IMG/VR virus record: IMGVR_UViG_3300037054_000148
Location: 124,001-188,000 of that record
Strand: one strand, 5' to 3'
Length of the DNA: 64,000 nt
Of the stretch, positions 1,634 to 27,677 are shown piece by piece. The translations under genes were made by a program, and so were the position numbers. The stretch's first letter is position 1, and each line of letters starts with the position of its first letter. The notes beneath the pieces are model-generated. The model searched no databases and was not told the DNA's origin. It saw only the letters and a program-made list of their open reading frames with translations.

Positions 1634-2188
1634 CTATCTAGTTAATGACCAGCCCTCGTTCAAATAGTAATCAATCTGCTGATTTCTCACTCGCTTATAC
1701 TTCTGTCCCTTATACATTTTTATTGTATTAGCAAACATTTCTTTCATTGATTGTCTCCACTCCTCATTGTTGGCCACATTATTATTCCCGCGCTTCTTTG
1801 CAATGGCTGACATTTTTTGTTTAGTTTCTTTCGAGCGTTTCACTCCAAGCTGAGACCCAGCGGTTACACAGGTATTATATAGTTCCACTCCATCAGATTT
1901 CAGTTTTTCCAACCAATACTGCTCTCTAAGCAGGAGAGCTTCTCGGGTGGGCTCAGTAACCTCTATAACTGACCATTGGAATGCGTTGACTCCATATCTT
2001 TCCCACGCCCGACTTAAATGCTCATTACTGTGGATTTTTTTGTTAAGCTCATTATGGTGCCGCCGCCATCTTCGGTAGAAGTTCAGGGCTGAACCTATAT
2101 AGCAGACTCCGCTCTCCTTATTATCTATGCGATACACCCCCGCCCTCATGTCGTACGGAAAGGGGTAGGTTCCCAATGGTCTCGCCAT
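1634..2188 (-). CDS. GIY-YIG homing endonuclease, free-standing, with NUMOD3-like segment
   Basis: GVYRIDN..CYIGSA.NFYRRWRRH, conserved E (LLLREQYWL) and YN; downstream KRSKETKQKMS motif; GAGGAG RBS upstream on the minus strand. Confidence 0.93.
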   Translation of the reverse strand: MARPLGTYPFPYDMRAGVYRIDNKESGVCYIGSALNFYRRWRRHHNELNKKIHSNEHLSRAWERYGVNAFQWSVIEVTEPTREALLLREQYWLEKLKSDGVELYNTCVTAGSQLGVKRSKETKQKMSAIAKKRGNNNVANNEEWRQSMKEMFANTIKMYKGQKYKRVRNQQIDYYLNEGWSLTR

Positions 2189-3181: not shown

Positions 3182-4120
3182 ATGACTATTCTATCCCGCA
3201 CCCAAGCACAGACCGCCCAGCTTGGTCAGATTCTGAAGACCGCAGCCGGTCGCCAGAAGCTAGCCGCCGCTCTAGGCCCCTCTCTTCGTCGTCGCCGTGA
3301 CTACATGTCAATCGCCCGTAAGGCATTGATGGTAGAAACACTTCCCGATGGAGCCCTCCCGATTTACGACAAGGAATTTGACGAAACCGGACGCAGCTTC
3401 GTGCAGGCGTTCGTGGTCGGTGAACAGGGTGGAGACGTTGTAAACGTTGCCAACCCAATCCGTGTCACGGTCCCCACGTTTGAAATCGTGTCCAACCCCA
3501 TGATTCCAATCACCCAGATCAAAGAGCGCAGATTCGATATCGTTTCTCGCGCCCTCAATCTGGCTAAGGCCGAAGTCGGTGCCGCTGAGGACAACTACGT
3601 CTTCAACCTCTTCCTGAAGATTGATGCTGCGGCCACTACCGCAACCTCTTCGACCGGATACACTGATTACGTTTACAACAAGAGCCTTGCCTATAACGTC
3701 TCTTCATCTTCCGGACCTTACGGCCTCGCCGTTGATCCTTTCGCAGATGCTTTCGGTATGGTGCAGCGTCACGATCTCTCTGTTGCCTACATCTTCATGA
3801 ACCCTCGTGATTATGTGGACATCCTGAAGTGGACTGATGACAACATCGACCGTGAGACTCAGCGTCACTTGCTGAAAACCGGTATCATGGGCTACCTCTG
3901 GGGCGCAACGATCTTGCAGTCCAGAAAAGTCGCTTACGGTGATGTCTGGGTCATGGCTGATGCCGAGTTCCTTGGTGTCATCCCTGAGCGTGTCCCCCTG
4001 ACCGTTCTAAGTGCTGATCGCCCTGACCTTCGTCAGATTGGCTTCAGTGTTTTCGAGATTCTGGGATTTTTAATTTTCAATCCTTCTGGATTGGAGAGAA
4101 TCGTAATCACCCGGTCTTAA
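3182..4120 (+). CDS. Major capsid protein (HK97 fold)
   Basis: 312 aa with strongly C-ending codons typical of high expression. Sequence fits large-phage MCPs (ETLPDGALPIYDKE; VTVPTFEIVSNPMIPITQIKERRFDIV; YIFMNPRDY; GYLWGATI). Followed by a strong terminator. Confidence 0.85.
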   Translation: MTILSRTQAQTAQLGQILKTAAGRQKLAAALGPSLRRRRDYMSIARKALMVETLPDGALPIYDKEFDETGRSFVQAFVVGEQGGDVVNVANPIRVTVPTFEIVSNPMIPITQIKERRFDIVSRALNLAKAEVGAAEDNYVFNLFLKIDAAATTATSSTGYTDYVYNKSLAYNVSSSSGPYGLAVDPFADAFGMVQRHDLSVAYIFMNPRDYVDILKWTDDNIDRETQRHLLKTGIMGYLWGATILQSRKVAYGDVWVMADAEFLGVIPERVPLTVLSADRPDLRQIGFSVFEILGFLIFNPSGLERIVITRS

Positions 4121-4319: not shown

Positions 4320-5570
4320 ATGGACCAGACAATCAAAGATGCTTTTGCGGAAATACCCCATGATCCAGATTGGTTGGATCGCTACTTGAATTTTCTTGAG
4401 GAATCCACTATTCCGACTGAGGATGACTACTCCGAGTCTCATCATATTCTTCCCAGGAGTCTGTTTCCTGACTTTCAGTTGTTTACTCAGAACCCTTGGA
4501 ATCGCATTGACTTGAAGGGGACGGACCATCTGATCGCTCACTACTTCCTACTGAAAGCTTTACCAGAGGTTCATGCACTCAGACATGCGTTCTGCTTCAT
4601 GGTGGGCATTAGGCAGGATCAGCCGGTTCCTGATATCTCTCCCATCCTTCTTCAAGAGATGGCTGAAGAGTATGTGTTTCAGAAAACTGGGCTCAGATGG
4701 GTAACTAAAGATGGTCAGGAGCTGAAGATTTTGCCTCATGAACACACGAAGTATTTAATGGACGGGTGGGCTCTGGGTAGGGCTTATACCCATTCTAATG
4801 AAACTCGGCTAAAAATTATTGATGGAAATAGGGAGTGGCACCGACTTGAATCTCTCAAGTCTGACGCTTATGTATATCTGCCCCACGGTGATCAACATCA
4901 TCGTCGTATATTTGGCTGCCCCCCAGAAGTTAGGGCAAAAATTTCTGCTGGGCTGACCGGATTGGTTCAGTCTGCTGAAACGATTGAAAAGCGGCGGCTG
5001 AAAATAGTTGGGACACATTGGGTCTGGAACCCAGACTCCAAGAAACAGTTATCCGTTTCTCGCCAGGGTGAGGGCAACAACCGCTTTGGCCAAGTTGGTT
5101 ATTGGCGAGACAAACATCATTCTGAAGAGGAAAAGCAAAAAACCTCTGAGTCTCTCAAGCAGTTCAACAGGGAACACCCTGATGTGAATCGGGATAACAA
5201 GCCCAGAGGGGAGGATCATTGGACGTTCGGCAGGGAGCGACCAGAGGAGACGAGACAGAAGATATCTGCCTCGCTGACGGGCAAGAAACAGTCCACAGCG
5301 ACCAAACAGAAACGTGCGGAGTCCCTAGCGATGACTAAACTTCCCTCTTTTACTCCAGAAGAGGAAAGTATTTTTCATCGCATCCTCTCTGCCCCGACTG
5401 ACAGAGAGCGAGAGTGTCTGGCTAGGTTGATTAGTTCCACCAAGCAAGCACCGGCCAAATCCTTAGCTCTGGGTCTCTGCTTCCTTCTCAACGGAGAGTG
5501 GCAGACTCGTGACCGCCGCTACTGGAGGACGGCTGAAACTTGGCTGAAGAAAAATAACATCGTTATTTGA
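4320..5570 (+). CDS. HNH homing endonuclease with NUMOD3-type DNA-binding repeats
   Basis: ESHHILPRS..NRIDL..DHLIAHYFL HNH core; repeated modules such as HSNETRLKI, PEVRAKISAGLTG, HSEEEKQKTSESLK and PEETRQKISASLTG. Confidence 0.88.
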   Translation: MDQTIKDAFAEIPHDPDWLDRYLNFLEESTIPTEDDYSESHHILPRSLFPDFQLFTQNPWNRIDLKGTDHLIAHYFLLKALPEVHALRHAFCFMVGIRQDQPVPDISPILLQEMAEEYVFQKTGLRWVTKDGQELKILPHEHTKYLMDGWALGRAYTHSNETRLKIIDGNREWHRLESLKSDAYVYLPHGDQHHRRIFGCPPEVRAKISAGLTGLVQSAETIEKRRLKIVGTHWVWNPDSKKQLSVSRQGEGNNRFGQVGYWRDKHHSEEEKQKTSESLKQFNREHPDVNRDNKPRGEDHWTFGRERPEETRQKISASLTGKKQSTATKQKRAESLAMTKLPSFTPEEESIFHRILSAPTDRERECLARLISSTKQAPAKSLALGLCFLLNGEWQTRDRRYWRTAETWLKKNNIVI

Positions 5571-10503: not shown

Positions 10504-11193
10504 TTGGGCGCACGAAGAATCTATAAGAAACAACCGTACGAAACTGGTATTTACCACATAAAAAACAGTGTGACTGGTAAATACTACATCGGTTCCTCAA
10601 TTGAATTATCGAAACGAATGGGGAGGCACCTGTGGGGACTGCGAAAAGGTATTCATCATTCACTCAAGCTCCAGAGGTCTTTCGATAAGCACGGTGAAGT
10701 TGCGTTCGAATTCAAGATCCTGCTGGTGTGCGAGGCCAAGGATGTCGAGATGTTCGAGACCAGAGCCATCCATGCCTATGACTCTTACCAGAATGGCTAC
10801 AACGTAGCCCCAGAGGCCAAGGGAGGGTTCATGCGGGGCCGCAAGTGGCCCGAGAGGACTAAGGAAGCTAGAGTCGAAGCTATGCGAGGGCGCACTCACA
10901 CAGAAGAGTCAAAAGCACGAATTCGAGAAGGACTAGCCAAACTGACTGAAGAAGAGAAGCAGGCCCATCGAGATTGTATTGGGGCCGCTAATCGTAAACC
11001 TAAAAGTGAGAAAGGCAAGAAAGCCATCATCCAGGGATTGAAGAAACGCTATGAGTCCGCTAAGGCGCATGAACAGACGGCAGAGGCCACAAGAAATTCT
11101 TGGGCTGCAAGGCGGGAAAAATACGGCCCGACTGGACGAAAACCGAAAAATAGTGCAGTTGTAAGTTGTTCTGAGGAGGTGATTTACGGCTGA
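10504..11193 (+). CDS. GIY-YIG homing endonuclease, free-standing
   Basis: GIYHIKNSVTGKYYIGSS..LSKRMGRH, E (EMFETRAI), GYNV; NUMOD3 MRGRTHTEESKARI. Confidence 0.93.
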   Translation: MGARRIYKKQPYETGIYHIKNSVTGKYYIGSSIELSKRMGRHLWGLRKGIHHSLKLQRSFDKHGEVAFEFKILLVCEAKDVEMFETRAIHAYDSYQNGYNVAPEAKGGFMRGRKWPERTKEARVEAMRGRTHTEESKARIREGLAKLTEEEKQAHRDCIGAANRKPKSEKGKKAIIQGLKKRYESAKAHEQTAEATRNSWAARREKYGPTGRKPKNSAVVSCSEEVIYG

Positions 11194-11968: not shown

Positions 11969-12283
11969 ATGAAATGGAGTCGCACACCCATGCAAGCCGA
12001 TATTAACCAGCAAGTTTACTACCTATCTGGCAAGCCCCAGAAGCTGGCGTCTTCGAAACGAGCGTCAGATAAAGGGTTGAAGAAGGCTGCGTCGATGGGG
12101 CTCATCAGGGTCGCTGGAAACTTTTTCGAATGCCCAAGCAGTAAGGATTTATGGAAAGTGGACGGGGATAAAGTGAAACGTGTGTCTTCAGTAGAAGTGG
12201 ACTTCAACGAAAAACTTTCCGCAGCCGACCCTGAAGATCCCAATGGATATTTGAAAGATATCCTGGCCCAACTCGATTTCTAA
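11969..12283 (+). CDS. Hypothetical protein
   Basis: 104-aa ORF; contains KLAS and KKAAS motifs. Confidence 0.65.
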   Translation: MKWSRTPMQADINQQVYYLSGKPQKLASSKRASDKGLKKAASMGLIRVAGNFFECPSSKDLWKVDGDKVKRVSSVEVDFNEKLSAADPEDPNGYLKDILAQLDF

Positions 12284-12297
12284 AAAGGTAAACCCTA

Positions 12298-13620
12298 ATG
12301 GACGACAACAAGCAATTCTCTCTTATCGACTCTTTCCTTCAGGATGTAGAACCCGACTATGGGAATATTGGCCTAAAAAAGCCTCAGAAGATGGATGAGC
12401 AATTCACTGATGCCTCGTCCCAGGTGGATAACGCCTTCCTTGACCAAATTGGGGGGAGGTCCGAGCACACTGTTGTTCCTTCTGGCCGAACTGCTGCTGG
12501 GGGTCGTGAGACTAAACCCATCAGGGACGCGACTACCGGAGACTCTGCTCTTGCTGATGCGTTCAAAGCCCTTGGAGCCGTAGAGCAGCATAACGAGCTT
12601 GATGTGCTCACGGATGCAGAAATCAAAAATCGTGTCAATTACCTACTGAGTTTGGGACACAAACCCAGTCGTGTGGCGGGTATGATGGAGAAGATGGCCG
12701 AGTCGGCTCTGAAGGTCTATGACAAGAAGACCACAACTGAGTTTCTTAAAGATCAGGCTGGGCAGGCTGGACTGGCCTATTTGGAGCCTAATTTTTACAT
12801 GAATTCTTGTGTGGCATCTGCTAAGGAGATCCAGAAGAACGGTCATCTAAACGCTATGTCAGTTAAAAAGATTGCCGCTTGCCCCGGATGCAAGTATAAC
12901 AATTGCGGTAATTGCACCCTTTATAGCCGCCCCATTGTTGCTTCGGCCAAAGAGCTTGAGACTGTGGTCAAGGCAAATTTGAAGGCCAAGGATATAAAAA
13001 TTGCCGGAACTTTGAAATCCACATTAGTCAAGATGCACGAAGGTGGGGAAAAAGAGGCCCAGGCCCTCCCATATAGCCGGAATACTGAAAAGTATGTGGT
13101 CAGGACTGCTGGTGATAAGCAGTCTATGGTCCACAAAGAGGCCAGTGTTGAAGAGATTGGCACTATGGTCAGTTCAGGCATCCCCCTTAAGGATGTGTAT
13201 AAGACCGCTGCGGCTCAGTATGGTAAGACTTCTGCAATGGCTGCGATTAAACGCTACATTACGGGCCTTAAGAAGAGTGGTGCAAAAGTGGTGCTGGCTG
13301 CGGTTGACTGCACTCTGCTGAAAAACAAGCTAGCAACTGGAAATGCCATTGTTGGTGAGAGTAAGTGTGCCTCCTGCTCCTATCGAAACGGAATGCACTG
13401 CGGTTTGACTGGTGGGACGCTCCTGACATTCCCTGGGATGGATCGCGTATCTTCTAAACATATCGCTCACGAAGGCGTGAAAGACGGGCGTGAAGTTCTA
13501 TTTGAGTTTGACCTTCTTGACACCGGAGAAGATAGCCCCATCGAGTATAAGGAAGTGCCAGAGCAGGCAGATACTGATGTGGAACTGACTCGTTCGTCAG
13601 AAATCAACATCGAGGACTAA
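12298..13620 (+). CDS. Cys-rich protein with duplicated putative zinc-binding domain (probable head-associated)
   Basis: Two similar clusters, C..CPGCKYNNCGNCTL and C..CASCSYRNGMHCGL; RTA, KIA and KTA motifs. Confidence 0.6.
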   Translation: MDDNKQFSLIDSFLQDVEPDYGNIGLKKPQKMDEQFTDASSQVDNAFLDQIGGRSEHTVVPSGRTAAGGRETKPIRDATTGDSALADAFKALGAVEQHNELDVLTDAEIKNRVNYLLSLGHKPSRVAGMMEKMAESALKVYDKKTTTEFLKDQAGQAGLAYLEPNFYMNSCVASAKEIQKNGHLNAMSVKKIAACPGCKYNNCGNCTLYSRPIVASAKELETVVKANLKAKDIKIAGTLKSTLVKMHEGGEKEAQALPYSRNTEKYVVRTAGDKQSMVHKEASVEEIGTMVSSGIPLKDVYKTAAAQYGKTSAMAAIKRYITGLKKSGAKVVLAAVDCTLLKNKLATGNAIVGESKCASCSYRNGMHCGLTGGTLLTFPGMDRVSSKHIAHEGVKDGREVLFEFDLLDTGEDSPIEYKEVPEQADTDVELTRSSEINIED

Positions 13621-14118
13621 ATGGAAAAAGACGGATTAATCACTTTTACGGTTCAGTCCACAGAGGCGGCTGGGAAGCCCTCTGAGGGGGAACTGTCAAA
13701 GCGTATGGTTGAGATTCTGGGGAAAATTAATGACCCCAGCCAGCCCGTATCCGAAATTAATCGACTGATTGCCGGTGAGATTGCCGTGGTCACGGGGGAG
13801 ATGAGTATGCTCTCTCAGGCCAATATGTACAAGCAGAAGCTCTATACCGAACAGATCAGATCTCTCAGAGATCTCTCTAAGACCCTCAGTGAGTCTGAGC
13901 TTCTTTCTAAGAAGGATTTCTTGAACTTTGATGGTCCGAAGTTCCAGTTCGTTTTCCAGGAACTTGCCGGTGCGGTTAGAAAGTCAGCCAAAGACTCCGG
14001 ATTCAGCGAAGATCAAACCAACACTCTGCTCCGTAATTTCCGAGACACGGTAACTCAGATGGAACCAGAGCTTCGCAAACAAACCGAAAAAATTGATTCC
14101 AGTTTTCTTCAGAGGTAA
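13621..14118 (+). CDS. Helical hypothetical protein
   Basis: 165-aa ORF starting immediately after the preceding stop; no diagnostic motif. Confidence 0.65.
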   Translation: MEKDGLITFTVQSTEAAGKPSEGELSKRMVEILGKINDPSQPVSEINRLIAGEIAVVTGEMSMLSQANMYKQKLYTEQIRSLRDLSKTLSESELLSKKDFLNFDGPKFQFVFQELAGAVRKSAKDSGFSEDQTNTLLRNFRDTVTQMEPELRKQTEKIDSSFLQR

Positions 14119-14120
14119 TA

Positions 14121-16856
14121 ATGGCACGAGTAGAAAAATCATTCACAACGCTAGGCTTGGAGGGCATCCTTCAGGGTGTCGTCGCTTGCCTCATTGATGC
14201 CGAGAAGAAGGCTCAGTCCTCTCGTGAGATTCAGTCTATTGATGTCAGTCGCCGTGGTCTCAGACAAGACCTCTACGTTGGCAAATTGATGGTGATCCCA
14301 GCTTCTGTCATGGATGAAATGGATAAGATTCCTGATCCGCTCCTCAAGGGCGCGGTTATCCGTCTCTTCGATGGAGAGGATGCCTCCTACCTGGAGATGC
14401 ACCGACTCAGCACGAGCGAGTTTGACAATTTGACTCCGAAAGAGATTAATGAATACAAGGATAAGGTGTTCAAGGATGCGGACGGAAAGATGGGGTGCAT
14501 CGTTATCTTCCAGCCAGCCTGGGGTAACGTTCGTGATCTTCATGCATTCCGTTTCACTAAGGAAGTCCCCAAACTGACTCTGCTGGTTCGTCACCTTGTA
14601 TTCTCCGCCTACTACAACCCCAGTCTTTCCGCATTGTTTGATACGCTAGCCGAAGACGCAATCAAACTGGATGCGGTGAACATCACCCACGATCACCTTG
14701 GCCCAGCTTATGAGTTTCAGTCTAAAGAGAATGTTTACCCTAAACTGGACAAACTGGCAAAGATTGCCGCCATCATGAAGATGAGCCCCGATGAGTTCAC
14801 TACAGCCTATCTGGAAGCCGCAGTGTGGACCGGAACGGATGAAACGGGTGAACCGCTGGATCGAGAAGGAAAATTCTCTATTGAGGATTTCTCCACCGAA
14901 GCTCTTCGAAAAGCTGAAGAAGATTGCACAGCCTTCATGGAGATGGCCGGTCCAGAATTGGACGCCCTGAGTTCCGATCAAGCGGGGCATCTGTTTTGGT
15001 TGAATCGTAACGGCCACGGCACCGGTTTCTGGGATGAGGATAAGCTCTCCCCAGAAGCTCAACAGTCCCTGGACAAACTAGCCCATTCATTTGGGGAATG
15101 TGATATGTATGTCAGTGATGACGGGGAGTTGGAACTCTCTGGAGGCCAGATTCCCGCACCCACTCCACAGCCTGGAAGTGGGCATATCCTCCCCAAGGAA
15201 TCTAAGTGGATTCGCCTAAACGCCGCCGCTCTGCCACTGATTTTGGCTGACAAGATCACACCTGAAGAGTCTAGTGTTTTTGACGAATTGACTATACAAT
15301 TAAAAAAAAAGACCGCTGGTAGCAAGACTGCTGTTGAAGTAGGGCCTTACGAAGGCTACTGCCCAATTTGTGGGACTCCTGGATGCCAGGGAGAGTGCTC
15401 CTCAGCCGGAACGGGGAATAAGGAAAATTTTACTGATCGAACCGCCACTGGGGATGCCGGTTCGGTAAGAATTCCCACCTCTCCTAATACCGGAACCCGA
15501 GCACAAGAAGATTTTCAGGATCCCGGTTCCCAACCGACTGAAGAGGAGCCGGTGCATTTTGGGTCAGCCAGGATGGCAGCTTTTTTAGAGAAAGTAGCAA
15601 GTGGTGAGGTTCTTAATGGGTATACACAGATGCGAGAGACTTTCAAATCTGACTTTGCTTCTAAGAACGAACCCACTAAGGAAACAGATCACGCAGAGGA
15701 TTTGGTCGCAAACAAGAAGGCAGCCGATCAGGCTGTTAGCTCTGCGGCTAACCGGCTGATAGAGCAGCATGAGGGGGAGTACCTCTCTAAAGAAAACTTG
15801 ATGCGACTCATATCCCACATGACGAACAATGTCAAAGCAGTGTTCTCCTTCCTAACACAGCAAGGGCTTCTTCAACCATACGGCAAGGATAGTTTCAAAG
15901 TTATGACCCGCACTGAGCAGGAGGATACCCATGGAGACGGGGTGTTCTGCCCTAACTGCGCTGGCCCTGGTGTTTCAATGGGGAACCTTGGTGGCCGTGA
16001 ACACTTCCGTTGTAGGAATTGCGGAACTGATTTCAGTCAAAAAACAGCCGGTGACGTTAAAACTGCGTCTACTCATAAGCTGGCCCTAACCTACATGCAT
16101 CCAGGTGAAGCCTTGGAGCAATTTTACCCGGAAATCCTGAAGGACACCTCTGACTATCCCATCGGTTACCCAGAGCGCAACTCCACCCCACCACCCCTCT
16201 CCTTGGAATTGCAGAATGAGCCGGGTGGCGAGTCTCAAGTAACGGACAAGGACTATAGTGATAATGGAATGAAGCACTCTTTAGGGGAGCCTGGACTGCT
16301 CCAAACTGAACAGGACAACTCCTCCGTTCCTCTCAAACCGAATGAACGTTCGATACGTGGTCCTTTCTTTTCTGACCAATTCTACCGAATCCACACAGAT
16401 ATTGAGCCAGCTTTACTGACCATGAAATCCTCTTTGGAGAACAAGACTGCGGCTGCCCCTGCCAAGGCGACTATTATAGCTGAGTTTCTCCGTAAACTAG
16501 CTGGTGAGATCGCTTCCTCCTTACTGGCCGCTTTTGTGGTAACAGACCGCCCCCTCTTTACCAACAGCCCCTCTTATTCAGTGGTAAACTTGGCAAATGA
16601 GTCTACGATTTGCCCCATGAACCCCCTGCTTACCAGCGGAGGGATGAGCCCCTATGTGGCTCAATTCAAGTCTCTGCTTTCCTCCGTCAATAGCGGAGAA
16701 CTCACTGAAGCAATCAACAACGCTTGGGCTCAGGGTGGGGTATGGCATGATGGTCCGGATGGCCGTTTCCTATACGAAATTTTCGTGAGAATCGAAAAAG
16801 TTGATCTGGAGACGCTGGATATCACGTATAAGTATATTACGGGAACCAAGGAGTAA
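14121..16856 (+). CDS. Large multidomain putative virion (poly)protein
   Basis: 911 aa. Contains a domain with AGHLFWLNRNGHGTGFWD, two zinc-ribbon clusters (CPICGTPGC; CPNC..CRNCG) and many K-x-A motifs at apparent domain boundaries. Confidence 0.6.
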   Translation: MARVEKSFTTLGLEGILQGVVACLIDAEKKAQSSREIQSIDVSRRGLRQDLYVGKLMVIPASVMDEMDKIPDPLLKGAVIRLFDGEDASYLEMHRLSTSEFDNLTPKEINEYKDKVFKDADGKMGCIVIFQPAWGNVRDLHAFRFTKEVPKLTLLVRHLVFSAYYNPSLSALFDTLAEDAIKLDAVNITHDHLGPAYEFQSKENVYPKLDKLAKIAAIMKMSPDEFTTAYLEAAVWTGTDETGEPLDREGKFSIEDFSTEALRKAEEDCTAFMEMAGPELDALSSDQAGHLFWLNRNGHGTGFWDEDKLSPEAQQSLDKLAHSFGECDMYVSDDGELELSGGQIPAPTPQPGSGHILPKESKWIRLNAAALPLILADKITPEESSVFDELTIQLKKKTAGSKTAVEVGPYEGYCPICGTPGCQGECSSAGTGNKENFTDRTATGDAGSVRIPTSPNTGTRAQEDFQDPGSQPTEEEPVHFGSARMAAFLEKVASGEVLNGYTQMRETFKSDFASKNEPTKETDHAEDLVANKKAADQAVSSAANRLIEQHEGEYLSKENLMRLISHMTNNVKAVFSFLTQQGLLQPYGKDSFKVMTRTEQEDTHGDGVFCPNCAGPGVSMGNLGGREHFRCRNCGTDFSQKTAGDVKTASTHKLALTYMHPGEALEQFYPEILKDTSDYPIGYPERNSTPPPLSLELQNEPGGESQVTDKDYSDNGMKHSLGEPGLLQTEQDNSSVPLKPNERSIRGPFFSDQFYRIHTDIEPALLTMKSSLENKTAAAPAKATIIAEFLRKLAGEIASSLLAAFVVTDRPLFTNSPSYSVVNLANESTICPMNPLLTSGGMSPYVAQFKSLLSSVNSGELTEAINNAWAQGGVWHDGPDGRFLYEIFVRIEKVDLETLDITYKYITGTKE

Positions 16857-17339
16857 TTGATGTCTGATACGAATATTGTCATCGCTCAACTGAAGAGTAT
16901 GATGAGTGAGGTTCTGGAACTTCGGGATCAAAAACCTGAAGCACAATCCAAGGCCATTGAACTCTTGAAAAATGTAATCAATGCTCTCCATCTGGGGCGT
17001 AAAACAGGGGCAAAGAGGGCTGCCACAGCCCCCAGGAGCTTTGATACCCCAGCCACCGAGTATTTGTACGGTCTGAAACCTGACCTCGAATCTGGCGACC
17101 CCAACCATGATAACGGCTGGTGGGGGCTTTATCTGGGTATGCTCTCAGAGGGCAGTCCAGAAGGTTCCGGTGTTTCCAGTGGGGCCGACTCTGATATGCT
17201 TAAGCGTAATCATGGTGCTATCATCCACGAAGCAGAAGATGGCTCTGTTACCGGTCAATTCTTTCCTCTTGAAGAAGATGCGGTTGACCAATGGGAAGAG
17301 TCTATCAGTGGCGACGAACCCGAACTTTCTCACATTTAA
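16857..17339 (+). CDS. Hypothetical protein
   Basis: 160 aa; helical N-terminus ending in KRAA, followed by a small acidic domain (NGWWGL..AIIHEAEDGSV). Confidence 0.65.
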   Translation: MMSDTNIVIAQLKSMMSEVLELRDQKPEAQSKAIELLKNVINALHLGRKTGAKRAATAPRSFDTPATEYLYGLKPDLESGDPNHDNGWWGLYLGMLSEGSPEGSGVSSGADSDMLKRNHGAIIHEAEDGSVTGQFFPLEEDAVDQWEESISGDEPELSHI

Positions 17340-17351
17340 TAGAGGTAATAC

Positions 17352-18617
17352 ATGAAACTCTCACTCACTGCAAGACTTTTCCTGGCTGATGTCTCTGGGT
17401 CTACCAAGGCCACCATCGTACAGATGTACAAAGCCAAGCCCACTTTCCCCAAAGATGACGCTCAGATCGGAGCAGTTCTTGCAGCTTTGGACTCCACTCT
17501 CCCCCCAGGTCTTCCTCCCAATCGTCAGAAGGTTTATTTGAAATATTTGGCCAAGCAGCTTTGGGGCATCACCCCTCCAGGATTCGTTTTGAAGATGAGT
17601 CCGGAGGGGCAGATCGACTTCGAGGATAAGCCCCGTGTCAGTTCTACGCTGGCTAATTTTGAGCAGGCCGTTAAGGACCAGACTCTAACCGGAGAGGCTA
17701 CGAATGTGGAAGCCTATGCCACCCTATCAGATATGCAGGAAGCTGCTGCCACGGAGAAGGGACAGAAAGTCAAGGCTAAGTTCACCATTGATAACCTTCC
17801 TGAAGAGGCAGAGTCCTCTAAGGGCGGTCAGCCCGGTAATCCCCGGCAGGCCGTAGCTGAGGGCAGCAAGGTGATTGCCCAGGACGGACCCTGGAAGTGC
17901 TACAAGATTAATGCCGGTGATCCAAAAGGTAAAGAAGCTGGAAGTTGGCTGGGAATGAACGGCTGGTGGGGCGTGAGTTGGTGTGTGGGCCGCGATTACA
18001 GCGGTGATGCCTGGAAGAGCCGCCCTTACATGAACGAAGGGGATTTTTATTTCCTGGTTCGTGATGGCATTAGCCGCTATGCCATTGCTACGGATGGATC
18101 CAAGGCGGATGTTTATAACCCTGCGGATGACGTGATTTGGCAGACCGGTGGAGCGAGTGGTGGAAACTTCCCGTCCCTGAAGGCCACAGCCAAGCAATTA
18201 GGGGCTGAGTTCAACGCAAGCTCTGTTTCTAGTCTTCCCCAAGAAGCTCTGGGTATCCTTCGTGCTGCTACGGCTGCTGACCCCTATCTGGCTGGTCTGA
18301 TCCCCCCAGACCAATTGAATGAGACTGACACATCCTCTCTGGACAAGGTTATTGCTTCTTGCCCTGCTGAGGGGTTGGTGAAGGATCTGAACTCCAACTC
18401 AGGCTATCGTGGCAAGGGAGTGACGGCTGGCATCATCAATCGTTGCGTGGCCAAGAATAATAAATTTGGCGCAAAGGATTTTTCCACTGTTTGGGATCAG
18501 TTCGGGGAGCAGGCTATGATCATGTATATTGAAGCTCTTGCCTCCAATGGTTACAAAGAGCTACCCCCCACATTGGAGGCTTACTTTGTCAAGGAGGCGG
18601 AGAACTTCGAGTTCTAA
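17352..18617 (+). CDS. Hypothetical phage protein with a WC-motif domain
   Basis: GAGG RBS; GWWGVSWCVG..PYMNEGDFYFLV resembles the W-C-x..Y..lyf domain common in large phage proteins. Confidence 0.6.
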   Translation: MKLSLTARLFLADVSGSTKATIVQMYKAKPTFPKDDAQIGAVLAALDSTLPPGLPPNRQKVYLKYLAKQLWGITPPGFVLKMSPEGQIDFEDKPRVSSTLANFEQAVKDQTLTGEATNVEAYATLSDMQEAAATEKGQKVKAKFTIDNLPEEAESSKGGQPGNPRQAVAEGSKVIAQDGPWKCYKINAGDPKGKEAGSWLGMNGWWGVSWCVGRDYSGDAWKSRPYMNEGDFYFLVRDGISRYAIATDGSKADVYNPADDVIWQTGGASGGNFPSLKATAKQLGAEFNASSVSSLPQEALGILRAATAADPYLAGLIPPDQLNETDTSSLDKVIASCPAEGLVKDLNSNSGYRGKGVTAGIINRCVAKNNKFGAKDFSTVWDQFGEQAMIMYIEALASNGYKELPPTLEAYFVKEAENFEF

Positions 18618-18640
18618 GCTGACTGAGAAAGTAAGGTAAT

Positions 18641-20494
18641 GTGAGTAGCAGACAGAGATTTAGCCAAAAGTCAAGGGAGTCGGTGCTGGGTGGGTTGGTT
18701 GATACTCACATCACAGACAGTACAACTCTGCTTAATGCCCTGGAATTCATTGAATCTCCTAGTGGGCTGAATATAACCTTATACCCAGTTCAGCGTGTTT
18801 TGATCAAATTGATATTTGGCATTCCGATGGACTGGGACGAACGGGAAGTGCCCGTTTACGACCAATTCTGTGAAAAGCTCCTCTTTACTTTTACAGAACG
18901 TGAATATATCCGTTATGTATTCGAGAAGGGTCGGATCAACATCCCCACCTGGGAGGATGCCAACCCGCTGGGATATAATGAGATTGACATGATTGTCGGT
19001 CGCCGTGGTGGTAAGAGCGTTGTGGTCGCCGCAGTTGCTGCCTACAAGCTCTACCTCTTGTTAAGCCATCGAGACCCCCAGGAATACTACGGCTTGGTCC
19101 CCGGTTCCCCGATTGATCTGACTATGATGGCCCAGGATTCCAAGGGGTCTAGTCGGCTTTATGATCAGCTTAAAGAGGATATCAACCGAGCCCCCTTCTT
19201 CGCCCCTTACATTAAATCCATGACAGGTGAGGAGATGACCTTCATCTCTGAATCTGACCGTGGTAAGCGAGAACTCACCCCCTCCATCAAAGCCGCCGCT
19301 TACCCCTGCACCACTAATGCCGTGCGTGGACCCAGCAGTTATTTCCTAGCCTTGGACGAGTTTGCTCACTATCGGCAGCAGATCGGTTCCACCTCTGATG
19401 AGATGTATTCCGCCGCCGCCCCCGCTACTATGCAATTCAAGGGTGGAGGAACCCGTGACGGTCTGAGGGAAAGTATGATTTTTATCATAACTTCCCCAGT
19501 AAATAAAATTGGTAAGTACTATACTTTGTTCAGGGATGCTTTATTGGAAGGCCCTTCTAGTCCTGTCCTAGCCTTCCAATGCTCAACCGCAGAGATGAAC
19601 CCTCGCTCCGACACTCCGTTCTTGAAGAAGGAGTACAAGGATAATCCTGAAAAGTTCAAGGCTGAGTATGGTGGGGAGTTTCTGGATGCATCTGAGACCT
19701 ATGTTAAAGGTTTAACGATTGATGAGTGTGTTGACCAAGATCGGGGTAATGTGACTATCCTCACTTCTTCTATGATAGGCCACAATTACTTCTGGGGTCT
19801 TGATTTGGGTATGAAACATGACGCTACGGCCCTTGCGGTCTGCCACTGGGAGGGGGGTCAGAACAAGGCATGGCTCGTATATGATTACATTGATAGGTTA
19901 ATGGTGGGCCTGGGTAAATATAAAGATGTTGCTGAACTTCCACTAGATGATGTGCTGGACTGGCTAAAGGACGCACATGCAATGCTCCCCTGCTTCCAGG
20001 GTGTGACTGACCAGTATGGTGGTTCCCTTCTGGTTCAGCTACTGAATGCAAATCAGGTAACTGGGATTGAGTTGCTTCATTTGACCTCTGGTGTTAACTC
20101 GCAAATGTACCTCACACTTAAAACTCTCATGGAGAATCGTCAGGTAAAGTTCCCTAATGTGTCTGCATTTGTCTTAGAAATGAAGCTCCTGGAAGCCTCT
20201 TTCATTAATAAATATCAGGTTATCGTTAAGGCTCCGACCGAAAAAGATGCTCATGATGATATGGCAGATGCGGCAGCTCTTGCAGCCTATAAAGCTCAGC
20301 TATGGGCCATAGGTGACGGTAAGCGTGTCATGTGGGACATCATGCAAGGGGTTCCGCAAAACATGATCCCCGGCACTATCAGGGGTGGGTGGGATATGAA
20401 TGGCTCCCTTGCCCATCTCAGATCCTACGAACGACAGCTTCAACATCAATTAAATCCCTATGGTGCGGTTCAAAACCCATGGAGAAGACATTAG
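18641..20494 (+). CDS. terL: Terminase large subunit
   Basis: Walker A VGRRGGKS, Walker B LALDEFAH, coupling motif ITSP, nuclease GLDLGMKHD and HDDMAD. Confidence 0.92.
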   Translation: MSSRQRFSQKSRESVLGGLVDTHITDSTTLLNALEFIESPSGLNITLYPVQRVLIKLIFGIPMDWDEREVPVYDQFCEKLLFTFTEREYIRYVFEKGRINIPTWEDANPLGYNEIDMIVGRRGGKSVVVAAVAAYKLYLLLSHRDPQEYYGLVPGSPIDLTMMAQDSKGSSRLYDQLKEDINRAPFFAPYIKSMTGEEMTFISESDRGKRELTPSIKAAAYPCTTNAVRGPSSYFLALDEFAHYRQQIGSTSDEMYSAAAPATMQFKGGGTRDGLRESMIFIITSPVNKIGKYYTLFRDALLEGPSSPVLAFQCSTAEMNPRSDTPFLKKEYKDNPEKFKAEYGGEFLDASETYVKGLTIDECVDQDRGNVTILTSSMIGHNYFWGLDLGMKHDATALAVCHWEGGQNKAWLVYDYIDRLMVGLGKYKDVAELPLDDVLDWLKDAHAMLPCFQGVTDQYGGSLLVQLLNANQVTGIELLHLTSGVNSQMYLTLKTLMENRQVKFPNVSAFVLEMKLLEASFINKYQVIVKAPTEKDAHDDMADAAALAAYKAQLWAIGDGKRVMWDIMQGVPQNMIPGTIRGGWDMNGSLAHLRSYERQLQHQLNPYGAVQNPWRRH

Positions 20495-22670: not shown

Positions 22671-22781
22671 GTGCGGATGACCTGGGACCACGGCTCCCAT
22701 GCCTCACGGCGGGTCATCTCCTGGGTAGCGGGTGGGGTTAAACTCCCCGTCTGCGGAAAGGTTCGAATCCTTTCGCACCTA
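22671..22781 (+). ncRNA. tRNA-like structured RNA, non-canonical
   Basis: T-arm AAAGG-TTCGAAT-CCTTT; termini GTGCG/CGCAC pair; internal hairpins GATGACC/GGTCATC and GGGG-TTAAACT-CCCC. Intergenic. No canonical cloverleaf fit. Confidence 0.5.
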
Positions 22782-23675
22782 CAGTCTTCCCCGCGCAAAA
22801 CCTTCAGCTACTTCAGAGGGTTTTGCGCGAAGTTCTATGACCCCATTGTTATACCAATAAACCCCTAGAAGGGGACTCTCACCATCCGGTGTGCTAAACA
22901 CTTTCTTTCGACCTTTCAGTGCTTTTGACTTGGCTTTATTTTGTTTTTCTTTTTCCTCATCAGTCAAGCTAGCCCAGTAGGCTCTCTGTTTAGCTGATGC
23001 TATTTCGCTTCGTAGTTCTCGCTGCTCTTCTGTCATTGCAGCTTCGCGTCTAGCTGCTACATCTCTTCCGATTTGAGTGAGACGTTCTTTATCCTCCTCT
23101 GTTAGACTAACTCTATAGTTCTTTATACCTTCTCGTTGCGCTTGAACAGTCTTGGTGTAGAGAGCTTCCTGTTCTTCCTGAGTTAACTGTCTCTTCCATG
23201 TCTTCAATCGCTCTGCTCCAGCTACCTGTAAAGCAGTCCGCTTCTTTGAATTCTTTTCCCAGAACTCAACTGTTCCTTGCAGTCTTTCCTTTTTCTCCTC
23301 ATCTGAGCATTCTTTCCAATAATTTACCATCTGGGCCGAATGTAAAGCTCTCGTTTCATCGGTGCAATTCTTCAAGGGGTTCACGGCAATGGGGCAGACG
23401 TTATATCCAATCTCTCTGTCGTATGATTTTAACAAATCCAGATACCGCTGCTCTTTTTGATCAAGTTCTTCCACTGAGCATTCACATAAAACCTCAAATG
23501 TAAACTTTTCAATTCCATATTTTTTGACAGCCGCCAGCAGATGCCGATTGTGGTGGGTGCCTTTTCTGAGTTTGCTCAGGTGTGACCAGAGCCGCCCTTG
23601 AAGATTGATGGATTGACCCACATAGACCTTGCCGTTCACAGTATTAGTTATTAGATAGATACCACTTTTCCGCAT
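22779..23675 (-). CDS. GIY-YIG homing endonuclease, free-standing
   Basis: SGIYLITNTVNGKVYVGQS.NLQGRLWSH, E (DQKEQRYL), GYNVC; helical repeats in the C-terminus. Confidence 0.93.
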   Translation of the reverse strand: MRKSGIYLITNTVNGKVYVGQSINLQGRLWSHLSKLRKGTHHNRHLLAAVKKYGIEKFTFEVLCECSVEELDQKEQRYLDLLKSYDREIGYNVCPIAVNPLKNCTDETRALHSAQMVNYWKECSDEEKKERLQGTVEFWEKNSKKRTALQVAGAERLKTWKRQLTQEEQEALYTKTVQAQREGIKNYRVSLTEEDKERLTQIGRDVAARREAAMTEEQRELRSEIASAKQRAYWASLTDEEKEKQNKAKSKALKGRKKVFSTPDGESPLLGVYWYNNGVIELRAKPSEVAEGFARGRL

Positions 23676-23686
23676 GGAGCCCTTTC

Positions 23687-24316
23687 GTGGAAGAAAATCT
23701 TGATTTTGAGTTTGGAGACAAGCTACCCTATCTGGATGATGAGATTCATCCTGACAGGTGGCTTCGGGCCAGAAATGAAATTGATCACGTAGCCCTTTTG
23801 GAAGAGTTCATTAAGAAACCCATAATGGGGAATGTCATAAATTGCCCGTTGGGGATTCACCGAGACTCTACCCCTTCCTTTAATATATACAGACAGTCCA
23901 ATTCTTCACATTGCTTTGGTTGCCCTGGAACCACGAAAGAGCAGTACAATGACAACGTGAACCTCGTCTCCAAATGGTTTGGTATCAATAAAGTAGCTGC
24001 CTTGCAATGGCTAGAGAAGCATTTTAAGCTCCCCCCGATTGCAGGACAACCTATCGAACCTGACGAGGAAGAAGAAAGGGACGAGGAGGAATCCGATCCA
24101 TTCACGGTGAAGGATCTGGTTCCAATGTTCCTTACGATAGCCCCCACTCTGATTGAAACAGTGGATGACGCTAAGTATCTGATAAAGAAATACTTCTTGG
24201 CTCTTCATCTTGACGATCCACTATTTTTGGCACGGGTTCTTGGACGAAAGCGGCTTGAGAGTATTAGATTATCAGGACGAGTGTCGAATGAAGGAATTGG
24301 AAGAAGCAATAAATGA
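23687..24316 (+). CDS. DNA primase zinc-binding (CHC2) domain protein
   Basis: INCPLGIHRDSTPSFNIY..HCFGC..DNVNLVSKW..AALQWL matches the DnaG CHC2 zinc finger; no Toprim domain in this ORF. Confidence 0.85.
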   Translation: MEENLDFEFGDKLPYLDDEIHPDRWLRARNEIDHVALLEEFIKKPIMGNVINCPLGIHRDSTPSFNIYRQSNSSHCFGCPGTTKEQYNDNVNLVSKWFGINKVAALQWLEKHFKLPPIAGQPIEPDEEEERDEEESDPFTVKDLVPMFLTIAPTLIETVDDAKYLIKKYFLALHLDDPLFLARVLGRKRLESIRLSGRVSNEGIGRSNK

Positions 24317-27300
24317 GCAAGATCCTGTAATAACGGGAAAGAAGCCTCGTAAAAAGAAGGAAAAGGCTGAGAAAAAGCCCAAGGCCCCCAAAGTAATTAA
24401 AACCCTCCGTGAGATATTTATGGAGAGGTTGGCCCTCATCGATATCGAAAACTTGAAGAAGCCATGGATGGCTACCAAATCGTTCAGGTTGATTGATACG
24501 GCGGAGGAGCTTCAACGCTGGGTTGATATGGTCATGAGCGATCCTGGACGCTCCCAGACCCACTCATGGGCTGCTCACACTGGCCCCGTCATTGCGGTGG
24601 ACACCGAGACGGATGGCCTGGATATTCGTGTAGTTGAAGGGAAGATGCGAACCAAGCTGGCAGGAGTCTGTCTGTCAGCCGATGGACTGGAAGGTCTCTA
24701 CATTCCGGTCGGGCATGAGAATGGGAAGAACATTCCCGCCACTGAGTTGGCCCCGATCCTCCAGAAGCTCTTTGACCAGTGCCACCTCGTATTTTTTAAC
24801 GCCAAATTTGACCGTGAGGTATTGCGACTCAGCCTTGGTCTGACTTTCAGGGATTACCCGTTCTTTGAAGATGTACAGACGCTGACCTACCTGGATGACC
24901 CTAAAGCCAAAGTTGATGACAAAGGGGCTGGCAGCCTTCAAGAGGGCCTGAAGAATCTTTCCAAGGTGAAGCTGGGGTTTGAACAGATTGAACTGGAAGA
25001 TCTGGTCAAGGTCAAGGCCAAGGTATGGAATGTGGAGTTGGAGAAGTACACCCAGCGTATGGTTTACTGCCCATTCACTTGGGTTCCTACAGAAATGGCT
25101 CTTTGGTACGCGGCTTCTGATGCAATTACCACTTGGCTGCTCTGGCGATTATTCCACCAGGAGCGAGATTTCTCCCAGATGTTGGGGGTCCATCGACTTG
25201 ACCATCTATTAGTGGACACCATTACCTGGATTGAGCGGCAGCGTCCTCGTGTGGATGGGGATCGTCTGCAAAATACTATTGACTTTCACGCTAGTCGGGT
25301 GAAGCAACTTACTGAAGAATTGGGTAAGATTTCCGGCATCGAAAATTTCAATCCCGGCTCTACTCCTCAGATCACCAAAATTCTTTTTGAGGACAGGGGT
25401 ATGGAGGTGATTGAACGGTCTGAGAAGACTAACGATCCGTCTACAGCTATTGGGGTGCTGAAAGAGCTTCATAAACGATACCCTACTGATGAATTTCTGA
25501 TTAAATTGATGGATTTTCGTGAGTACGCGGCTCTGCATCCAGCTAGTATGCGTTATGACCCAGTTGACCACACAATTAGGTTCTACCTCAAACAGAACGT
25601 TGTGGCTGGCGGTCGTCTCGCGGCTGCGGGTGGAGAGTTTGAAAAGGATGGCGGGTGCCAACTTAACCCCCAGGCTATCAAGAAGGTGGGTGGAAATTGG
25701 TGGGTCAAAGGGTGGCTGTTGGACACGCTTCCAGAAGAGTTCGCCGCTCTGACGATTCTCACGGAGTATCCGGACCCCTCTATGCTAGAACCCTCTTGTG
25801 TTAAGGATGGAAAGATCGCCCCCAATATCGACTCCAATAACCACACGGCCACCTATTTTGGCAGACGCTACTGCATGGTCCCCTCCTGTAAGTCTTGTTT
25901 ACGGGCGCTAAAACCAGAGCGGATAGACGCCAATGAGATTATCAATTTCCGAGGTCTGATTGTTGCGGATCCAGGCTGGACGATGTTCAGTTCTGACTAC
26001 AGCAATATTGAAATGAGAGTAGCAGCAAACATTTCAAAAGAACCGCTATTCATCAAGGAGTTCATGGAAGGGGCGGGAGACTTCCACTCTCTCACCGCTA
26101 TGGCCCTTTTCCCTGAGTTTTCTAATCCCAACACCCCCAAGGCCAGAAAAAAAGAGCTTCGTGCATTGGCCAAAATTATTAACTTCGCTTTGTTGTATGG
26201 CGGGACTGCCTATACGATCAAAGAGAACATGAATAAGGAGGGGTTCAACATTAGCTTTGAAGAAGCTGAAGAACTGGTCCAAAAATATTGGGATTCAGTG
26301 CCCACGTTCGCCGCATGGTGCCAGAATAAGCGTGATGTGGCCAGAGCGAAATTGATCTGCCGTACTCCAACGGGTCGGATCGTTAATTTTGAATCAGCCA
26401 TGAAGGGATTCCGTATCCATAAGCCAGAGCAGTGGGAGAAGGACAATTTCTGGGAGTGGAAGAAGTTATGTAAGCGTGAGGTAGAGCTTACTCGCTTGGA
26501 GCTTAAAGAGGATGCGTTGGCGGTAAAGAGGACTGCGGAGGCAATTTGGGCTAATCCTAAATCTGGAGTGCGTAACGTTCAGGAGTTCAATCGTTTCCTG
26601 GGCAAGGCAGAGCGGGTAGCCATCAACATCCCGCTTCAGGGGACCGCAGGAGATCTAATGCGCTCCGCCCTAAATCGGATTCGTATTTGGGCATTGGCCA
26701 ACCCAGGTCTAGAGAAGGTGTTCCGTCTTCACCTTACTGTGCATGATGAAATTGACTTTTCAGTGAAGAATGAGTTCGTACCCTATGTGCTGCCTAGGGT
26801 TAACCGATTGATGAAGCTCCGCAAACTCCATGCATCTAAGGGATGGCCGGTACCTATCGAAACAGACTGTGAGTATGGACAGACCTGGGATGTGAACCAG
26901 CACCTTACTGGAGATGATGGTCATAAGGCGGCTGGATGGACGGCCATTGCGGGAATGGAAGCTTACACCCCTCCTGATTTCGCTGAAGATGTGGTAGACC
27001 GGATTGTTGACACATGGATGAAGGGCGACCGAGAGCGGGTAACTAAGTGGTTGCAACAGCTTCATCCCAGAGTTCATGGCTATTTGGCAGAGTTTAATGA
27101 TGACCCTGAGACGGTCCGTCATTACCTCATTGTAATGCTCCAACTCCACGAATTTTGGAAAATCGATGAAGATGAAAGTGACACGTTGACCTTGTTGGAG
27201 TATGCGGAGGAGAATGGTTTGAAGATAACTGAAGAGCCCCTGGTGGGTAATCTTTCGGGCTATTTGAACTCCGTCCCCCCGGAGGACATACCTATTGTCA

Positions 27301-27677
27301 CAGAGGTGGTGTTGGAACCAGAGGCTCAGTCTGAGCCAGAGCTAGCGGTAGAGCCGGAAACTGAGAAAATCACTTCCATCGAACAGCTTCATGAAATGGT
27401 ACAGAATGTCGTAGAGATGGCAGCAGCCGGAGAAGTGGAAGAGGAAGTGTTCTTTCAGGAACCCCCTCGTAAAGAGGTAGCTCAGGTTGTGGGTACAGCC
27501 CCAAAAATTCCAGTTGTTCGGAATATGGACCTGGATGAACAAAAGGTGTTCAAGACACTAATAGGAGCAGGTTTGGGTAGAAAGGAGATCGAATTTGTTT
27601 ACGAATTTGATAGCAAATATTACAAGATACCTAACACTATTACTGATGTGATTCCCAAGGAATACCTGCTATGTTAG
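24288..27677 (+). CDS. polA: Family A DNA polymerase with 3'-5' exonuclease, no 5'-3' exonuclease (ORF open from 24210)
   Basis: ExoI AVDTETDG, ExoII FFNAKFD, ExoIII YAASDA; motif A DYSNIEMR, motif B RALAKIINFALLYG, motif C LTVHDEI. Confidence 0.95.
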   Translation: MKELEEAINEQDPVITGKKPRKKKEKAEKKPKAPKVIKTLREIFMERLALIDIENLKKPWMATKSFRLIDTAEELQRWVDMVMSDPGRSQTHSWAAHTGPVIAVDTETDGLDIRVVEGKMRTKLAGVCLSADGLEGLYIPVGHENGKNIPATELAPILQKLFDQCHLVFFNAKFDREVLRLSLGLTFRDYPFFEDVQTLTYLDDPKAKVDDKGAGSLQEGLKNLSKVKLGFEQIELEDLVKVKAKVWNVELEKYTQRMVYCPFTWVPTEMALWYAASDAITTWLLWRLFHQERDFSQMLGVHRLDHLLVDTITWIERQRPRVDGDRLQNTIDFHASRVKQLTEELGKISGIENFNPGSTPQITKILFEDRGMEVIERSEKTNDPSTAIGVLKELHKRYPTDEFLIKLMDFREYAALHPASMRYDPVDHTIRFYLKQNVVAGGRLAAAGGEFEKDGGCQLNPQAIKKVGGNWWVKGWLLDTLPEEFAALTILTEYPDPSMLEPSCVKDGKIAPNIDSNNHTATYFGRRYCMVPSCKSCLRALKPERIDANEIINFRGLIVADPGWTMFSSDYSNIEMRVAANISKEPLFIKEFMEGAGDFHSLTAMALFPEFSNPNTPKARKKELRALAKIINFALLYGGTAYTIKENMNKEGFNISFEEAEELVQKYWDSVPTFAAWCQNKRDVARAKLICRTPTGRIVNFESAMKGFRIHKPEQWEKDNFWEWKKLCKREVELTRLELKEDALAVKRTAEAIWANPKSGVRNVQEFNRFLGKAERVAINIPLQGTAGDLMRSALNRIRIWALANPGLEKVFRLHLTVHDEIDFSVKNEFVPYVLPRVNRLMKLRKLHASKGWPVPIETDCEYGQTWDVNQHLTGDDGHKAAGWTAIAGMEAYTPPDFAEDVVDRIVDTWMKGDRERVTKWLQQLHPRVHGYLAEFNDDPETVRHYLIVMLQLHEFWKIDEDESDTLTLLEYAEENGLKITEEPLVGNLSGYLNSVPPEDIPIVTEVVLEPEAQSEPELAVEPETEKITSIEQLHEMVQNVVEMAAAGEVEEEVFFQEPPRKEVAQVVGTAPKIPVVRNMDLDEQKVFKTLIGAGLGRKEIEFVYEFDSKYYKIPNTITDVIPKEYLLC

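Follow-up and report, generated by a model that had tools for sequence, protein, structure and literature searches.

A two-ended family of modular jumbo-phage proteins and a K-x-A motif shared with head-module proteins

The 911-amino-acid (aa) product of an open and intact reading frame (ORF) at positions 14121-16856 (+) of the window, that is the 64,000-nucleotide stretch analysed here (bases 124001-188000 of one 313,597-bp virus record of a jumbo phage, IMGVR_UViG_3300037054_000148), belongs to a protein family in which two conserved ends enclose a variable middle made up of small domains. A short motif, lysine-any residue-alanine (K-x-A), is strongly over-represented in this protein, keeps its position at the junctions between the parts, and is shared with the flanks of the head maturation protease and with other head-module proteins. 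Judging from these sequence comparisons, K-x-A is probably the cutting site of that protease, and we tentatively favour the view that the ORF (P0001) encodes a protease-processed, head-packaged modular cargo protein of this jumbo-phage lineage.

Domain architecture and the two-ended family

An AlphaFold2 model of the protein (87-row alignment; mean predicted local distance difference test score, pLDDT, 70.9; predicted template modelling score, pTM, 0.36) resembles beads on a string. Four confident domains (aa 11-170, 221-345, 530-642 and 779-911) are separated by low-confidence linkers, with a helix (381-401), a Cys4 knuckle (414-426) and two weak helices (483-509) as minor elements. The chain begins with a conserved alpha/beta domain (aa 11-180; 14151-14660, this and the following ORF features being on the plus strand) that is present in 56 of the 56 family members and may serve as a prohead-targeting or propeptide part; homologues with conserved N-termini confirm the start of the ORF. 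Junction 1, a linker of pLDDT <50 with K211-L-A and K214-I-A (14751-14768), leads to cassette D2 (aa 221-345; 14781-15155), a phrog_1915-type domain with a HLFWLNRNGHGTGFWD motif. The pair K397-T-A and K402-T-A (15309-15332) marks the start of the insertion that carries the Cys4 cassette and is confined to the closest orthologues; its knuckle reads C414-x2-C417-x4-C422-x3-C426 (15360-15398). Cassette D3 (aa 525-642; 15693-16046) comprises a helix, a winged helix and a zinc ribbon (C610-x2-C613 and C631-x2-C634) of IS1 InsA-like shape. A disordered linker with K641-T-A, K647-T-A and K653-L-A (junction 2; 16041-16085) precedes a conserved, mostly disordered C-region (aa 656-774; 16086-16442) with the short linear motifs PG-x-V/L-x-x-FYPE and PLR-x-E-x-x-IRGP-x-F-x-x-x-FY, and junction 3 (K775-T-A; 16443-16451) stands directly before the conserved C-terminal alpha/beta domain D4 (aa 779-911; 16455-16853; pLDDT 85-97). 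The lysine and cysteine clusters that a first-pass annotation of the window had quoted are all present at these places, together with K491-V-A, K532/K533 and the longer form K775-T-A-A.

That annotation had also described one of the domains as a small stand-alone phage protein, and rightly so. D2 matches the profile of phrog_1915, a PHROGs family of unknown function (aa 224-335, E 1.7e-16, profile positions 10-136 of 141), and occurs elsewhere as a free-standing protein of 115-150 aa in many phages, with structural matches to stand-alone viral proteins at template modelling (TM) scores of 0.85-0.9. Stand-alone D2 genes are found in arrays of small early-type genes and, in Caulobacter jumbo phages, within the terminal repeats, locations consistent with a factor required at the very start of infection. 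When compared with the PDB by Foldseek, D3 matched winged-helix domains and D4 was weakly PAS-like; the ribbon of D3 resembles IS1-type transposase zinc ribbons. No convincing fold relative of the N domain or D4 was found in PDB Foldseek, ESM Atlas or VIA-align wide; the ESM Atlas search with the N domain and with a model of the N and C domains gave no match, and the best Z for a minimal family member in VIA-align wide was 6.2, below the level of a relative. In BFVD and in AFDB clusters the only fold matches were D2-like proteins, all uncharacterised, and a zinc ribbon of IS1 type. Neither D2 nor the family profile nor the head protease had a relative in a sequence search of solved structures, and Pfam returned no family at E <= 0.01 for the 911-aa protein.

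Searching 1.84 billion representatives for the family gave 66 matches at E <= 1e-30. The N part (aa 1-215) and C part (aa 647-911) occur together in 56 proteins, including gp350 of Tunturi_5, a cultured Acidobacteria jumbo phage, the other relatives being on contigs of up to 286-313 kb. Members are 494-1521 aa long, with middles of 50-1181 aa (median about 500 aa, with 9 K-x-A sites). Only the two ends are common to the family: distant members share none of the middle, and minimal members (about 500 aa) consist of little more than N plus C, with all three junction K-x-A kept. Among close orthologues the Cys4 knuckle (absent from P0004, P0005, P0007, P0008 and P0009), D3 (present, partial or absent) and extra segments are gained or lost, and a median of 46% of the middle aligns even at 55-65% identity (blastp alignments covering the N domain). 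Cassette content therefore differs between orthologues with both flanks conserved, as the first-pass annotation had anticipated. In nine relatives and 52 middles the few Pfam matches were below threshold or to unrelated zinc-motif and domain-of-unknown-function families, and phrog_1915 was the only PHROGs family recurrent in the middles. Two apparent one-ended members have simple explanations: the 'C-only' P0020 is a fragment of a contig, and the copy seen in the 'N-only' P0088 is frameshifted or split. One metagenomic member (L013:1160-4677) appears to be spread over three ORFs through a frameshift and a stop, either an assembly error or a real split, and its middle contains several zinc-ribbon cassettes, each near P-K-T-A. 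A further motif, GLR-x-Q-PDYGE after GDAGS-x-R-x-P, is degenerate in the 911-aa ORF (window 15480-15540, aa ~455-472) and strongly over-represented in the disordered middles of most family members (PDY 35 vs 2.8 expected), where it may be a docking site.

An arrangement of this kind could also arise if the protein were a structural or assembly component of the head or neck, with N and C as its working core and the middle as a permissive insertion hot spot for selfish or neutral domains that have no cargo role. We regard this as unlikely. The minimal members, with nearly no middle, do indicate that the middle is dispensable for the core role of the family; the C-region has strongly conserved linear motifs, typical of binding partners; and the genome is full of homing endonucleases, and so tolerates insertions. 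The inserted pieces, however, are folded domains that are independent genes in other phages and usually bring their own K-x-A, those of P0003, P0004, P0005 and P0007 beginning with one, and a median middle of about 500 aa with nine K-x-A is hard to call neutral. Moreover, an AlphaFold2 model of the N and C domains (pTM 0.47) again shows separate confident domains with low-confidence linkers between them and does not pack the two against each other with confidence.

The K-x-A motif and the head module

The 911-aa protein contains 16 K-x-A where 4.6 are expected from its own K and A content (Poisson 2.7e-5), which ranks it first for this enrichment among the 388 ORFs of the genome, and of the 35 KTA tripeptides in the entire proteome it contributes 5. 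Codons vary synonymously between its K-x-A sites, indicating selection on the protein level. A DNA-level repeat as the source of the motif was rejected, given these codon differences. K.A exceeds expectation more than any other spaced pair across the middles of 54 relatives (502 vs 254, 1.98x, z 15.6), in which KTA is enriched 5.5-fold. Other spacings in the middles give 1.04x (KA), 1.18x (K..A) and 1.07x (A.K), the whole set of KA, K..A, K...A, AK and A.K ranging from 0.86 to 1.18x, and the whole proteome stands at 1.12x. Local Lys/Ala richness was likewise rejected as the cause, because neither the other spacings nor the reverse order is enriched.

In the family the motif logo is (S/A)-K-(T/Q/K)-A-(A/S). 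K-x-A is present at junction 1 (after the N domain) in 49 of 54 relatives, at junction 2 (before the PG-x-V/L-x-x-FYPE segment) in 50 of 54 and at junction 3 (before D4) in all 54, i.e. in 91-100% vs an average of 15.5% for background windows, and these three sites are thus positionally conserved despite variable surroundings; K653 and A655 are invariant in 8 orthologues. Ends of homology blocks fall within 5 aa of a K-x-A in 28.6% of cases vs 18.8% at random. In the AlphaFold2 model the K-x-A at 211/214, 397/402, 641/647/653 and 775 lie within or right beside the low-confidence linkers 183-218, 400-410, 645-659 and 768-774, respectively, those at 211, 214, 402, 647 and 653 being inside linkers at pLDDT <50 and those at 397, 641 and 775 at linker edges. 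The proposal in the first-pass annotation that K-x-A delimits the domains thus agrees with the predicted boundaries, at three of which the motif is conserved family-wide.

The motif is also concentrated in the head module: 9 of the 11 most K.A-enriched ORFs of the genome lie within a 36-kb head region (binomial 1.5e-7), with enrichment in the scaffold-like and ejection-like proteins and the portal. In Tunturi_5 the scaffold-like gp332 likewise has 16 K-x-A vs 5.6 expected, and gp328, labelled 'DNA ejection protein', has 19 vs 8.8. The head maturation protease of the present phage (293 aa, phrog_18299; genome 122896-123777) was found through PHROGs, the Pfam S77 and S78 models having no match anywhere in the genome. 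It has His114 and, in an SMGC motif, Ser170, with HK97-like spacing, and from what is known of S78 proteases we take it to be of HK97 type, without a profile match. Among 119 protease homologues K-x-A is conserved at positions 15, 42, 48 and 271, with 6.2 and 4.1 sites per 100 aa in the two flanks vs 0.47 in the core; the same bracketing of the catalytic core is seen in Tunturi_5 gp331 and in gp19 of Bacillus phage G. This distribution is consistent with a link, if an indirect one, between K-x-A and the head protease. Herpesvirus assemblin cleaves (V/L/I)-x-A-S between the alanine and the serine, and HK97 cleavage falls after a lysine; in view of the assemblin site, cleavage of K-x-A-(A/S) after the first alanine is chemically plausible for the protease fold.

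Two further observations concern this group of proteins. Between the Ser170 motif and its C-terminal half the protease has a conserved Cys3His insertion (C180, C183, C194, H196) that is also found in phage G gp19. In addition, genome positions 118182-120713 (~3.3-5.8 kb upstream of the window start) encode an 843-aa protein with 16 K-x-A and several Cys-x2-Cys zinc motifs, which lies after the tail sheath gene and a small ORF and before the protease gene. This is the place of gp328 in Tunturi_5, to which it is likened by position alone, and it has the appearance of another modular head protein that may be processed.

The enrichment could have a different meaning if the protein were an uncleaved multidomain internal head or polyvalent protein, packaged and perhaps ejected whole, in which K-x-A, as a linker feature, serves for docking (for example to capsid, portal or DNA) or marks lysines that are modified. 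There is precedent: the N4 virion RNA polymerase and many of the polyvalent proteins are carried without being processed (PMC5512222). Structured parts contain half of the K-x-A, and a protein with a winged helix, zinc ribbons and linkers rich in Lys and Ala would be well suited to bind DNA within the head. We nevertheless consider this improbable, since a docking or modification motif would not be expected around the catalytic core of a protease, as it is in the 119 homologues and in phage G, nor would its enrichment in a scaffold-like protein, which normally must leave the head, and since the three junction sites fall exactly between domains.

The ORF is located between the genes for the major head protein (3182-4120) and the terminase (18641-20494), and it is packed end to end with its neighbours (gene boundaries 13620/13621, 14118/14121 and 16856/16857), which places it in a morphogenesis/packaging block. 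The downstream genes, for products of 160 aa and 421 aa and the large terminase subunit (16857-20494, +), continue this packing and support the same assignment. A role outside the virion, for example as a regulator made during infection that contains DNA-binding modules and is either unprocessed or cleaved by a host or another phage protease, is therefore very unlikely in our view: the winged helix and the IS1-like zinc ribbon would fit such a regulator, and packaging is itself a proposed step, but the block between capsid genes and terminase is tightly packed, its synteny is conserved, and the motif is common to head-module proteins.

Proposed processing and relation to known systems

According to the cargo reading that we favour, the ORF would encode a late, morphogenesis-linked protein with the conserved N domain and C region as fixed ends. 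Between these ends there would be an exchangeable string of small autonomous domains (here the phrog_1915-type domain, the Cys4 knuckle, and the winged helix with its zinc ribbon), the pieces being joined by flexible linkers with (S/A)-K-(T/Q/K)-A-(A/S). The conserved ends would recruit the precursor into the prohead, where the head maturation protease would then cleave accessible K-x-A sites, be it after the Lys or after the Ala. The protease would also trim its own N- and C-terminal extensions as well as the scaffold-like and ejection-like proteins, and the freed cassettes would remain in the head and reach the cell with the DNA as ready-made factors. Cleavage, packaging, ejection and an effector role of the cassettes are thus what we infer from the architecture and the distribution of the motif.

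A number of points weigh against this reading. Eight of the 16 K-x-A sites lie in folded or helical parts of the AlphaFold2 model, so that K-x-A alone does not have the power to define a cut, and the protease homologues are 56-86% identical, so that the conservation of their flanks may partly be plain relatedness. Conservation at both ends could equally mark a functional core, with the middle merely tolerated. None of the cassettes has a known function (Pfam gave nothing and PHROGs only unknown-function families), and a whole-record protein search found no family member in phage G, the capsid and protease of which are related; a profile comparison of phage G gp7 as a possible homologue was negative. 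The literature holds no proteomic, N-terminal or transcript data for this phage or Tunturi_5. A co-fold of the protease with peptide 636-662, which scored 0.03, weighs neither way on binding.

A broader version, which we think somewhat doubtful, is that the family is a dedicated carrier in huge phages (the Tunturi_5 relatives, with capsid and protease akin to those of phage G), such that the two ends would bring the chain into the prohead, where any small domain placed between them along with a K-x-A would be freed by the head protease and then injected, and that K-x-A represents a new, clade-wide specificity of prohead proteases. That such a carrier would amount to a plug-in delivery of pre-made takeover or anti-defence factors is a conjecture about which we are similarly reserved. 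If K-x-A is indeed a cleavage code, the mature virion proteins of a large and mostly uncultured clade of huge phages would become predictable from sequence. The family would then represent a catalogue of small proteins delivered before any gene expression, and its middles a good hunting ground for new inhibitors of bacterial defences, and the conserved ends could serve as handles to load foreign proteins into capsids. These predictions are directly testable in the cultured phage Tunturi 5.

The closest parallels in domain organization are the polyvalent proteins (Iyer, Burroughs, Anand, de Souza, Aravind 2017; PMC5512222), which likewise combine many unrelated small domains in one polypeptide, have a mosaic domain content and are encoded in virion or packaging gene neighbourhoods; their delivery together with the DNA has been proposed, and some of them undergo proteolytic processing (PMC5512222). 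The 911-aa protein has at least two unrelated domains (four confident AlphaFold2 domains and the Cys4 knuckle, in a family with a mosaic middle) and has virion and packaging genes around it, from the major head protein to the terminase, with synteny kept. Of the domains in the polyvalent collection (MuF, ArdC-N, ParB-like, methylases, SNF2, zincin peptidase, LPD) none was detected by Pfam in the 911-aa protein, nine relatives or 52 middles. The present family differs from polyvalent proteins in that two conserved ends flank the variable part, and in that the junction motif points to the prohead protease and not to a zincin peptidase within the chain.

With regard to processing, the nearest known systems are the head and ejection proteins of T4 (IPs, Alt), phiKZ, 201phi2-1 and SPN3US, which are packaged in the head and cleaved by a prohead protease at a motif of three residues, of which the middle one is free (PMC10052503). 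In the T4, phiKZ and SPN3US systems the protease makes several cuts in long N-terminal propeptides and also trims its own chain (PMC10052503). In SPN3US, gp245 has A-x-E as its cutting site, takes off propeptides of 111-254 aa in multiple cuts and shortens its own C-terminus (PMC10052503). The present phage resembles these in having a recurrent short motif common to several head proteins and to the presumably removable extensions of the protease. The enriched motif, however, is K-x-A followed by A or S and not the L/I-x-E (T4) or A-x-E (SPN3US, phiKZ) of these systems, whose general form, (L/I)-x-E or (S/A/G)-x-E, is cut after the Glu. The candidate substrate, for which cleavage is a prediction, consists of exchangeable folded cassettes instead of one mature domain behind a propeptide, and the protease, though of HK97-type appearance, is missed by the Pfam S77 and S78 models.

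Comparison may also be made with the Dar system of phage P1 (DarA, DarB, DdrA, DdrB, Hdf, Ulx), in which defence-countering proteins are loaded into the head at morphogenesis through an N-terminal targeting signal and DarA and DdrB are processed; these are separate gene products and not parts of one chain. We found no sequence similarity to the P1 Dar proteins. Pfam detected neither the N6-adenine methyltransferase nor the helicase domain of DarB (a protein of ~250 kDa) in the 911-aa protein or in Tunturi_5 gp350. The public 'DarB-like' label of gp350, which comes from the automatic structure-based annotator Phold, is unsupported. MuF-domain polymorphic toxins and SPP1 gp7-like head proteins similarly fuse a conserved head-incorporation domain to variable cargo, but MuF cargo is C-terminal, whereas here the cargo is internal between two conserved ends and several cassettes share a chain. 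No N-terminal Phage_Mu_F domain was matched by Pfam, and the N domain is without a fold match. The first-pass interpretation as a cleavable cargo polyprotein is partly supported, neither the boundary sites nor the cassette variability refuting it, but its designation as an undescribed system was overstated. The 911-aa protein falls into none of the defined families compared here, and what is new is its family, the two-ended architecture, the swapping of cassettes between fixed ends and a candidate cleavage code, K-x-A, for a clade extending to phage G; the underlying logic is already known from polyvalent proteins and from head proteins processed by a protease.

Neighbouring genes and other features of the window

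Three syntenic genes stand immediately upstream of the family gene (104, 440 and 165 aa; 11969-14118, +) and are conserved beside it in Tunturi_5 and in metagenomic relatives: Tunturi_5 and contigs of 286 and 305 kb all have the order exonuclease, ~100 aa, ~440 aa, ~165 aa and family gene. The 104- and 440-aa products contain several K-x-A, those of the 440-aa product being position-conserved in both orthologues, and the latter also has Cys motifs. The first-pass annotation had instead ascribed a similar design to the genes starting at 16857 and 17352. These have one and two K-x-A, respectively, and that of the 160-aa protein (16857) is not kept in position in the orthologue of the 305-kb relative (L003), and the ascription is not supported; it is the upstream 104- and 440-aa genes and the head-module genes that have the motif in common with the ORF. 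Pfam gave nothing useful for the neighbours of the ORF.

Upstream of and across the window start are the genes for a tail sheath protein of 1291 aa, the head maturation protease and, directly after the latter, a scaffold-like protein of 419 aa with 9 K-x-A sites, which begins 137 nucleotides upstream of the window and has its 3' part at 1-1122 (+). The major head protein (phrog_2522; 3182-4120, +) is 66% identical to Tunturi_5 gp334 and 36% identical to phage G gp27, has no delta domain, and is distantly related to mycobacteriophage capsids (e.g. Myrna, I3, ScottMcG). Its N-arm carries K19-T-A-A, which is K-S-A-A in Tunturi_5 and absent from phage G. Further downstream are the DNA polymerase (24210-27677) and the portal protein (28183-30498, +), which has 9 K-x-A sites, including K11-V-A-S near the N-terminus. 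The portal gene is directly followed by that of a 1065-aa protein with a CBM_5_12 carbohydrate-binding module (30498-33695) and then by that of a collagen-like tail-fibre protein (34347-35864).

The morphogenesis region of the window has an unusually high density of homing endonuclease genes. Profile matches identify an HNH gene at 4320-5570 (+) and a GIY-YIG gene at 10504-11193 (+), and the ORFs at 1634-2188 (-) and 22779-23675 (-), with others just upstream, are assigned to GIY-YIG by N-terminal sequence motif only. The terminase has 617 aa here (18641-20494) vs 1001 aa in the 305-kb relative (L003:14850-17855), where a faint LAGLIDADG match suggests that the longer protein is likely to contain an intein or endonuclease insertion.

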